Origin: Bispira polyomma
Lineage: Eukaryota
Assembly (NCBI GenBank): GCA_965649765.1
Contig: OZ287755.1
Location: forward strand, 62,558,001-62,622,000
Direction: 5' to 3'
Length of the DNA: 64,000 bases
Shown in pieces: positions 11,459-61,336 of the stretch (its first letter is position 1; every line of letters begins with the position of its first letter). Under the pieces are notes generated by a model. The model was not told where the DNA came from. It was given only the letters and a program-made list of their open reading frames with translations, and ran no database searches. A program made the position numbers and the translations under genes.

Positions 11459-11685
11459 TCACCCAGACGGTCCTTTTGACTGTAAGTGTGAGAGATCAAG
11501 GCAAGCCCTACAGCATGTGTTCCGCGGACCTCCTAGCTCTCTGCAGAATTGTGGGTAATCGCGGGTGATAATAGAGCAGGAGTTGACTTTCTCCACGTAA
11601 TCCGTGCTGCCATCTGGTTTGTAGTGAGTCACCAGGTAGTGGTTTGTGGCTGACAGGGTGTCACGACAGTTACACCGACGCATAT
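11459..11685 (-). CDS. Exon E23: gamma module, probable terminal exon ending QSKGPSG-stop
   Basis: tttctgttag|AT. Encodes CNCRDTLSA...SCSIITRDYPQFCRELGGPRNTCCRAC. TGA at 11459-11461; no further module exon seen downstream. Confidence 0.88.
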
Positions 11686-11930
11686 CTAACAGAAAACAAA
11701 CAAACAGTTAGTCAACAACAGTCGGGAATTGTACATTTGATTTATTTATTCATTCGTAAACTAGGTACAATATAACATGTTTATACAATGTAAAAAAAGA
11801 AGAGAAAAATGATACAAAAAAAAATTAATAAATTAACATACATATTCAACATTAACATCTGTACATAACACTAGGATTCTACTCAGTAAATAGTAATTTA
11901 AAAAACTTTCTTAAAATTTACCTGCCAAAA

Positions 11931-12134
11931 TTACCATAACATAACATAACATATTGCATTTGGTATATGCTTTGTCATGTGTTATTGTAAATGTGTACAT
12001 GTGTGTAGTTTAAAGTCTGAGATCACCTCTATTACCATAACATAACATAACATATTGCATTTGATATATGCTTTGTCATGTGTTATTGTAAATGTGTACA
12101 TGTGTGTAGTTTAAAGTCTGAGATCACCTCTATT
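11931..12134. repeat. 102-bp direct tandem duplication
   Basis: TTACCATAACATAACATAACATATTGC...GAGATCACCTCTATT occurs twice. Confidence 0.85.
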
Positions 12135-12149
12135 GAGATCTTAGCCGAA

Positions 12150-12380
12150 TTTACAGTTTACACCCAAGCCTGGGTTTTTCCACTTGTCAGACAATTGTTC
12201 AGTCTCAGCTCCCTCAGAAACATACTAGCCATGCTGCCACATGTGGCGCACAAAGACAAACACCCATTAGCGGCCAGAGAAAGCACTTTGTCCAAAGGTA
12301 TAATCTCCAGGCCTGCAGCGAACCAGGACTTTGAGATCACTCAGATCCAAAGTCCGACACTCTAACCGCTAGGCCACAAA
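12150..12380 (-). mobile_element. tRNA-derived SINE, third family (copies ~46175-46415 minus, ~14090-14235 plus)
   Basis: Head TGTGGCCTAGCGGTTAGAG; shared body GAGGGAGCTGAGACTGAACAATT...ACAAGTGGAA...CCCAGGCT. The copy at 46310 has CCCAGGTGTATAAATGGGTACC. Confidence 0.72.
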
Positions 12381-12445
12381 GACCACCTGACATTTATTCC
12401 TAGAATTTTACTTTTTATCCCTTGAATAAAATTTAAAAAACTGAC

Positions 12446-12583
12446 CAGCATGTTTACAGGAGTCACAACAGTGGTTCCTGACATGGAGACAACGACAAGG
12501 GTCCAAGTGTACGTAGTCTCGACAGTTATACTTGACACCGTCTAGCTGCCAGTACATCAGGGAGTCGTCTACACAGCTCAGGT
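12446..12583 (-). CDS. Exon E22: beta module, paralog of E9
   Basis: tttcccag|AC ... GCT G|gtcagt. Encodes LSCVDDSLMYW...NCRDYVHLDPCRCLHVRNHCCDSC. Confidence 0.9.
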
Positions 12584-59100: not shown

Positions 59101-59264
59101 ATATGCAATCAGAATCTTTTTTTTTTTTTCTTTTTTGTACACAAAGATATCGTATTGAGAGATAATTGTTTGTCTGGTGTGAGTAAAATACTAGATCTGT
59201 CAATTTTGTTGAATATTATGCAACTTAAACACCAAGCCTTAAGGAATTTAACAATTTGCCAACA

Positions 59265-59575
59265 CTTGGAGGTGTGGAAACATTGAGGCTAAGGTAATTG
59301 TAGGAACATTGAGGTGAAGGGAGGTGTAGAAAGACTGAGATGAAGGGAGGTTTAGGAACATTGAGGTGAAGGGAGGTGTAAGAACATTGAGGTGAAGGGA
59401 GGTGTAAGAACATTGAGGCAAAGGGGGGTGTAGGAACATTGAGGTGACGGGAGGTGTAAGAACATTGAGGCAAAGGGGGGTGTATGAACATTGAGGTGAC
59501 GGGAGGTGTAAGAACATTGAGGCAAAGGGGGGTGTAGGAACATTGAGGTGAAGGGAGGTGTAAGAACATTTAGGT
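59265..59575. repeat. 26-bp minisatellite, ~12 copies
   Basis: GAACATTGAGGTGAAGGGAGGTGTAA and GAACATTGAGGCAAAGGGGGGTGTAG variants. Confidence 0.9.
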
Positions 59576-59683
59576 AAAGTACACAAGAAAAAGGCCATTT
59601 TGACGTTGTAGACCATATACCTGAACCAATCAGAAATTGGTACACAAGTCCATCCTCTATCAAATAGGTCAGAGACAGCCCTT

Positions 59684-60420
59684 CAAACAATATTTGAAAG
59701 ATGTCAAGATTATGGGTTTTAATTCAAACAATATTTGGCAGATGTCAAGACTATAGGTTTTTTTTCAAACAATATTTGGCAGATGTCAAGAGTATGGGGT
59801 TTAATTCCAACAATATATGGTAGATGTCAAGAGTATGTGGTTTAATTCCAACAATATCTGGTAGACGTCAAGACTATGAAGTTTAATTCCAACAATATTC
59901 GCCAGATGTCAATACTATGGGTTTTAATTCAAACAATATTTGGCAGATTTCAAGACTACAGGTTTTTATTTAAACAATATTTGGCAGATGTCAAGAGTAT
60001 GGGGTTTAATTCCAACAATATCTGGTAGATGTCAAGACTATGGGATTTAATTCCAACAATAGTTTGTAGATGTCAAGACTATGGGTTTTAATTCAAACAA
60101 TATTTGGCAGATGTCAAGACTATGGGTTTTAATTTAAACAATATTTGGCAGATGTCAAGACTATGGGGTTTAATTTAAACAATATTTGGCAGATTTCAAG
60201 ACTATGGGGTTTAATTCCAACAATATCTTGTAGATGTCAAGACTATAGGTTTTTATTCAAACAATATTTGGCAGATGTCAAGACTATGGGGTTTAATTCC
60301 AACAATATCTGATAGATGTCAAGCCAATGGGGTTTAATTCCAACAATATCTGGTAGATGTCAAGACTATGGGATTTAATTTTAACAATATTTGGCAGATG
60401 TCAAGATTATGGGGTTTAAC
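59684..60420. repeat. 41-bp minisatellite, ~18 copies
   Basis: AAACAATATTTGGCAGATGTCAAGACTATGGGTTTTAATTC repeats. Confidence 0.93.
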
Positions 60421-60800
60421 ATCCATTTTAATATCTAAAGCAGCATAAGCCTAACACATAGTAATAGGTTCTCAATCATCTGTACTTCAATTAAGCATAC
60501 TAGAAACTTTGGCTTTGCCGTTGCTGCACAAAATCTTATACTACAAAGTAACCTAGCTACAGGTTCAGAAGTCAGTTGGAAACCTATAATTTAAGGCTTG
60601 CATCAATACAGTGAGTTAAAAATGCAAAATACAATACAATCTCCACTGAGCAGGAAACTCACATTAAACATCTGAAGGGACCATAACTATTTTAAATTAG
60701 AAAATACATCAATGGAACCTTCAACTAACTTCTACTTATATTCCAAGTCTCAGAAGAGTTCTACTTAAAGGGCGTTTGACTATTCATTGAAGACACTTAC

Positions 60801-61336
60801 TTCCAATAGACCTGCAAGAGCTGCAGCAATCCCCGCCGATGGAACCCATCATGCTGCACAAACTGGGATAATCCCTGACAATGTCGGAGCATGACGTCAC
60901 GGTCACCATCTGGTTCTGGAAGCCTGTGATTGGATAGTTTATTCTACCTGCATCAGAGCATGTGTTCACCACACGGGCAACACCACCACCGCCGCCACGT
61001 CTTTGGCCACCGCCTCCTACTCTGGTCCTCACAACTTCCTGGACAACTTTTCTGCCACCACCTCCACCTCCTCCATTAGTACGGGTGACAGACCCACCTC
61101 CTCCATTAGTACGGGTGACAGACCCACCTCCTCCATTAGTACGGGTGACAGATGCCCTTCCGCCGCCCCCTCCACCATTAGTACGGGTGACAGTCCCACC
61201 TCCAGCATTAGTACGGGTAACATATGATCCACCTGCGCCCCTGGCGCCAGTTATACGATTAGCAGACCCTCTGCCGCCACCGCCACCAGTTCTGACAACC
61301 TCATGGACCATGCCACCAGCACCACCAGCCCCTCCT
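60801..61336 (-). CDS. Exon E1: Gly/Arg-rich low-complexity segment (GGGSVTRTN repeats) plus alpha module 1
   Basis: Acceptor ttcttccacag at 61337 and donor A|gtaagt at 60800. Encodes CSDAGRINYP...SCSDIVRDYPSLCSMMGSIGGDCCSSC. Confidence 0.88.

Follow-up and report, generated by a model that had tools for sequence, protein, structure and literature searches.

The window that we analyzed was a 64,000-nt stretch of the Bispira polyomma genome (C8:62558001-62622000), and the genome-wide searches described here covered 1.035 Gb. Six-frame scans identified 16 cysteine modules with the pattern C-x-D...C...C...CC-x-x-C on the minus strand of the window, between positions 11459 and 61336. The exons encoding the modules and linkers, as well as the associated noncoding features, were as follows, in the 5' to 3' direction of the minus strand.

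60801-61336, minus: Gly/Arg-rich linker and module 1 (class C, 6 Cys); ortholog present
55980-56128, minus: Gly-rich exon ending in QTKG-stop, first alternative end; donor after the stop in both species
52980-53700, minus: putative 3' UTR of the short form, patchily conserved, ending in a conserved AATAAA
46455-46545, minus: module 2, first half, phase 1-2
44228-44417, minus: module 2, second half, and acidic linker
43390-43786, minus: KGP-repeat linker
42080-42247, minus: module 3, class A, 7 Cys
41038-41286, minus: module 4, class B, 7 Cys, long loop
39803-39967, minus: module 5, class C
37145-37285, minus: module 6, class A
34520-34711, minus: module 7, class B
27339-27515, minus: module 8, class C
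26259-26402, minus: module 9, class A; extra Cys in Bispira polyomma only, absent from the second species
25047-25333, minus: module 10, class B, with short tail and stop, second alternative end
23220-24215, minus: four collinear conserved noncoding blocks, putative 3' UTR behind module 10
21379-21561, minus: module 11, class C, short loop and tail
21079-21220, minus: linker exon with one KGP
18458-18606, minus: acidic linker exon
16937-17149, minus: acidic/Gly/Tyr linker exon with KGP and KG
16169-16738, minus: acceptor and start of the module-12 exon, in five partial tandem copies
16031-16168, minus: module 12, class A, close paralog of module 3
14722-14934, minus: module 13, class B
13416-13574, minus: module 14, class C, close paralog of module 5
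12446-12583, minus: module 15, class A
11459-11685, minus: module 16, class B, with tail ending in KGPSG-stop, third end

A strict six-frame search for the pattern yielded 15 matches in the window and missed only module 2, which was split by a phase-2 intron. No matches were obtained in any of 60 local dinucleotide shuffles or in 140 kb of flanking DNA. Twelve of the modules each occupied one symmetric phase-1 exon. As for the rest, the exon of module 1 had phase 2-1, module 2 was divided over two exons, and modules 10 and 16 were in phase-1 exons that terminated in a stop codon. A previous sequence-only reading had described 16 cysteine modules, mostly one per symmetric phase-1 exon, with Gly/Arg-rich, KGP-repeat, and acidic linkers between them; the modules were borne out by the negative controls and by their collinearity in a second species, the exon organization held for 12 modules, and all three kinds of linkers were present in the window. 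That reading had also counted 23 exons, 22 of which had collinear orthologs in the second species. A 23rd exon between modules 10 and 11 was not confirmed, and the candidate that we considered there, at 22409-22353, was rejected because its ortholog was absent from that species.

Additional features were observed in the window. Every one of the partial copies at 16169-16738 ran into a stop codon, only the last acceptor opened an exon, and the copies were not seen in the second species. A second, diverged copy of the module-10 exon's 3' end, likewise terminated by a stop, was located at 24205-24286, ~760 nt behind the first, with repeat-like DNA in between. In region 2300-5900, a plus-strand Harbinger/PIF-like transposase frame (2310-2759) was faced by a minus-strand MADF/Myb-like frame (~4060-5610), both named by resemblance only. 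Introns contained LINE reverse-transcriptase fragments at 18800-20350 and 62600-63440, the latter with at least 40 genomic copies at ~85% identity, and an intron of the gene contained a 62-codon plus-strand frame with three Cys (54983-55168).

The orthologous locus was found on a 1.4-Mb contig from another species (ENA ERZ22147071). Specifically, an HMM search with the window exons over 1.84 billion representatives returned relatives, three of which were on the ERZ22147071 contig; one module-13-like exon was found in another sample. All 22 retained in-window exons were collinear in the second species, and the modules were 53 to 94% identical. The pooled dN/dS between the two species was ~0.10 for the modules and 0.26 for the linkers, the latter being a loose value that included one upstream exon in the wrong frame. 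Most of the intron pairs had no shared sequence. The collinearity of the exons in the face of mostly unshared introns, together with the dN/dS of 0.10, indicated that the exons were genuine coding exons. Two differences in gene structure were also noted: the second species lacked the phase-0 intron (43787-44227) that separates the KGP exon from the tail of module 2, reflecting an intron gain or loss, and the ortholog of the module-11 exon (L018:440-460) had an apparent GC donor, versus GT in Bispira polyomma.

The sequence-only reading had matched the Cys pattern of the modules to PLAC rather than ShKT. The PLAC pattern starts with C-x-D and ends with CC-x-x-C. All of the modules ended in CC-x-x-C and not in the ShKT-type C-x3-C-x2-C, and in this respect the PLAC-like assignment was correct. 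PLAC is a six-Cys extracellular module of ~40 aa (PMC8221789), and the ShK disulfide connectivity is C1-C6, C2-C4, and C3-C5 (PMC6409789). The PLAC model PF08686 (cutoff, 26.4 bits) had no match among the window modules, and none of the 8 places in the genome that exceeded the cutoff was on C8. Similarly, none of the 46 genome matches to the ShK model PF01549 was on C8. Among 54 aligned family members, 1 matched PLAC weakly (E 0.005), 2 matched Crisp (~0.01), and 0 matched PF01549. Because the Pfam PLAC and ShK models found true members elsewhere in the genome and not here, the modules, although similar to both families, belong to neither.

In an AlphaFold2 model of a B module, which was generated from 38 sequences (pLDDT 87), the stretch from the first to the second core Cys formed a beta-hairpin; the other elements were a pair of short helices and one helix at the C-terminus. 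When the model was compared with 48,161 solved chains, only two chains had a Z of at least 2, and both were weak (2.0-2.1) and of the ShKT type: hookworm Acan1 and the C-terminal domain of the CRISP pseudechetoxin (6dri Z 2.1, 2dda Z 2.0). The Atlas language-model feature neighbors were ShK (0.83-0.87), in agreement with the weak structural matches, and Foldseek PDB, Atlas shape, and PDB sequence searches returned no matches. Hence, the "rather than ShKT" part of the earlier assignment was too strong, since PF08686 did not recognize the modules and the structural and language-model neighbors were ShKT/Crisp. The modules are a separate ShKT/Crisp/PLAC-like family with a beta-hairpin insert, positioned between PLAC and ShKT, and they are predicted from the model to fold as small, disulfide-locked, ShKT-like beads.

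Compared with the PLAC domains (PF08686) of ADAMTS, ADAMTSL, papilin, lacunin, and C. elegans DYF-4, the modules were alike in their C-x-D start and CC-x-x-C end, but they had 16 to 41 residues between the first two core Cys, predicted to form the hairpin, they were arranged in tandem and not as a lone copy at the C-terminus, those of classes A and B had a seventh Cys, and they never reached the PF08686 cutoff. ShKT (PF01549) and CRISP C-terminal (PF08562) domains were alike in their predicted helices and were the sole structural neighbors, at weak Z-scores, and multi-ShKT secreted proteins were alike in having a signal peptide and tandem modules. In contrast to ShKT, C4 and C5 were adjacent here instead of spaced as in C-x3-C-x2-C, a hairpin insert was predicted, and PF01549 was not matched; the A-B pairing and the KGP linkers were further differences.

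The six core Cys were invariant in modules of 40 to 71 aa, and three classes were distinguished. Class A modules had a seventh Cys in D-P-C-x-C, class B modules had a seventh Cys just before C-x-D, and class C modules had six Cys. Along the gene, the class order was C, C, ABC, ABC, AB and then C, ABC, AB. The A modules formed a well-supported clade (100/99), and modules 3 and 12 were close paralogs, as were modules 5 and 14. Each of the 15 A modules compared had a spare Cys after it: 5 in this gene, 6 in its ortholog, 1 from a paralogous locus in the second species, and 3 in the homolog P0001, which is described below. A and B modules were always paired, with one spare Cys each. This arrangement suggests that the spare Cys of A forms a disulfide bond with the spare Cys that starts the B module of the next exon, and such inter-module disulfides are probable. 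As for the array itself, the second species had an additional linker-A-B unit (L018:3580-13605), in which exons like those at 17149, 16168, and 14934 were duplicated, indicating that the array is still growing by multi-exon blocks.

Profile searches located at least 69 further module exons, counted from coordinates. They formed 13 additional clusters, distributed over C1, C2, C3, C4, C8, C9, and C11. This result supported a multigene family. In these clusters, which are known by coordinates only, A and B/C types alternated wherever both scored. In the cluster at C11:27691992-27729039, pairs of module exons recurred every ~9.08 kb with equal scores, and this array reflects either tandem amplification of very recent date or an artifact of the assembly.

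Homologs were searched for exon by exon. P0001, a full-length, intron-free homolog on a JGI contig from a metagenome collection (sample 3300008031), consisted of a signal peptide, C, A-B, A-B, and A, followed by a lone C-terminal Cys; its single-sequence AlphaFold2 model had a pLDDT of 33. All 27 of the checked homolog matches were in ENA, Logan, or JGI assemblies, none was in NCBI or UniRef, and none had an informative name. Word-index searches, which covered sequences of similar length, yielded no additional homologs, and literature searches returned no account of the family. The sequence-only reading had called the family uncharacterized, and these searches agreed. P0011 and P0015 were more distant proteins with a signal peptide and tandem CC-x-x-C modules and no Pfam match. 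P0005 and P0020, which were repetitive ORFs without the Cys pattern, were set aside, and P0003 was also left out of the homologs.

In the linker behind module 2 (the module tail and 43390-43786), 10 of 10 Lys were in KG, mostly 15 to 18 residues apart, and in its ortholog 10 of 11 Lys were in KG and the flanking residues had changed. KG accounted for 14 of the 25 Lys in the long linkers versus 3 of the 29 in the modules (Fisher p 0.0004). None of the 13 KGP lysines had another Lys within five residues, and two of the three predicted C-termini ended at KG or KGP. KGP in a Lys-poor context is a conserved lysyl oxidase (LOX) site in the telopeptides of invertebrate fibrillar collagens (PMC5120351), and the match to this consensus suggests that the product is a LOX-cross-linked extracellular matrix protein. 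The KGP motif by itself is insufficient proof of LOX action. LOX domains were found in the genome at one locus on C5 (27871669-27879502) and in ~7 tandem copies on C11 (13565913-13784522), an apparent expansion.

As in collagen telopeptides, the x-K-G-P sites were in a Lys-poor, nonhelical context; unlike in collagen, there was no triple helix or COLFI domain, and ~10 sites followed one another in one linker, whereas a telopeptide has one. Gly-rich, low-complexity arms are typical of invertebrate material proteins, and silk-like Gly-rich structural proteins share secretion, modularity, and such arms with the product described here (PMC4944945). They differ in that about half of the present protein would consist of folded disulfide beads, with no poly-Ala and no sequence homology found. 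With KGP arrays in a LOX-type context and Gly-rich arms, a cross-linked structural protein, as proposed earlier, is plausible. P0001 had no KGP linker, which indicates that cross-linking is not the function of the whole family and that binding or assembly must be a function of the beads themselves.

When the search was extended upstream of the window, a hydrophobic signal-peptide exon of 18 codons was located 12.4 kb beyond it (L004:2319-2373), with a TATA box ~110 nt upstream. Two Gly/Ser-rich exons (L003:2589-2727 and L003:1032-1217) were between the signal exon and the window. The signal exon (80% DNA identity), its donor, and the TATA box were kept in the second species, and a second copy of the signal exon was not found in the genome. 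The secretion predicted in the sequence-only reading was thereby substantiated. In ADAMTS, ADAMTSL, and papilin proteins, one PLAC domain is located at the C-terminus and is preceded by protease, TSP1, or Kunitz domains, and no exon for any of the latter was seen between module 1 and the conserved TATA box and signal exon. Thus, as the earlier reading had held, these exons are not the terminal part of a gene of the ADAMTS or papilin type.

Two internal stops were conserved. The QTKG-stop of the exon at 56128 was common to both species and was immediately followed by a near-consensus donor; the stretch behind it was patchily conserved, with a conserved AATAAA near 52990. In the case of the module-10 exon, a stop followed the short tail in both species, no consensus donor was present in either, and four collinear conserved noncoding blocks were located behind the stop. 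The reading that fits these sequences best, and the simplest one, is a single promoter with three alternative ends. The predicted products would be a 354-aa protein with one module, proteins of 751 or 1038 aa ending at module 10, and, with the choice of upstream donor determining the length, proteins of 538 to 1463 aa that end at module 16.

We propose the following explanation. One transcription unit, with a TATA box and one signal-peptide exon, would use its three stop-bearing ends to make secreted proteins that differ in length. Each module would be a ShKT-like bead, locked by disulfides and carrying a beta-hairpin insert, and the spare Cys of adjacent A and B modules would clamp them as a unit. 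The disordered linkers would offer isolated KGP lysines to LOX, and the proteins would become covalently cross-linked into an extracellular material, for example a cuticle, tube, cocoon, or basement matrix. For this explanation as a whole, right and wrong are about evenly balanced.

Three separate tandem paralogous genes, with their own first exons and the same kind of protein, would be an unlikely arrangement. It would account for the close paralogy of modules in different segments, for the stop in each segment, and for the layout of segments 2 and 3, each of which copied P0001 minus the signal peptide (a C module and then A-B runs). However, all three segments began with a phase-1 acceptor, compatible with the donor of the known signal exon. 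That exon was readily detected between species, whereas the same kind of comparison gave no first exon ahead of module 2 or 11 that was conserved or otherwise convincing. Neither interval contained a signal-type exon with a good phase-1 donor or a conserved block, and only ~1.6 kb separated the 3'-UTR-like blocks from module 11.

It is quite unlikely that the modules are ShKT-type bioactive domains (ion-channel toxins, defense, or mucus signaling) made as polyproteins with the linkers as spacers. The nearest folds, Acan1 and the CRISP C-terminal domain, and the strong expansion of the family would suit such a role, and tandem ShKT proteins are known from invertebrate secretions (PMC6409789). 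However, no furin-type sites were found in a forced frame through all 16 modules, and this result, along with the strong purifying selection and the paired modules with their probable inter-module disulfides, makes a toxin polyprotein less likely. The selective KGP arrays and the Gly-rich arms also point away from it and toward material proteins.

Similarly improbable is a giant protein of ~1590 aa with all 16 modules as the main product, which the sequence-only reading had favored. In a local frame check, all phases could fit and a 1593-aa frame without an internal stop could be forced, and an in-frame GT was present at both junctions in both species. The frame would require two very weak donors: the in-frame donor at the first junction scored 1.2, compared with 7.2 and 12.8 for the donors after the QTKG-stop, and the in-frame donors at module 10 scored 2.0 or less, on a matrix built from only 22 sites, two of which scored 2.5 and 4.7. 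Moreover, a giant protein would not explain why the stops, the strong donor behind the first of them, and the UTR-like blocks with AATAAA are all conserved. The conserved stops and 3'-UTR-like sequences and the weak read-through donors therefore make a single 16-module protein unlikely. Given the small donor matrix and the use of GTTAG donors at the signal exon of the ortholog, minor read-through of the internal stops is possible.

Finally, it is very improbable that the proposed explanation holds in all respects except that KGP or QxKG serves transglutaminase or lysyl-hydroxylase glycosylation instead of LOX, because a Pro that follows KG, in surroundings poor in Lys, specifically fits the LOX telopeptide site (PMC5120351), even though Gln was often two residues ahead of the linker Lys in both species and X-Lys-Gly is the lysyl-hydroxylase site (PMC5983607).

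The modules define an unannotated domain family that links the PLAC and ShKT types and, in one genome, comprises at least 85 module exons that Pfam did not recognize. A single module is a small, confidently modeled unit for structural study. The conserved alternative ends of the gene are open to direct test. If the KGP arrays are LOX sites, then a noncollagenous protein would be reusing an ancestral collagen cross-linking motif serially, and it would be a candidate component of an uncharacterized annelid biomaterial. More tentatively, and although the full combination is rather improbable, the gene may belong to a lineage-specific, noncollagenous matrix in which chains of a new ShKT/PLAC-like domain, exon-spanning disulfide pairs, serial KGP sites, and expanded LOX cross-linking would form a worm-specific material, with the length of the proteins set from one promoter via three conserved ends.
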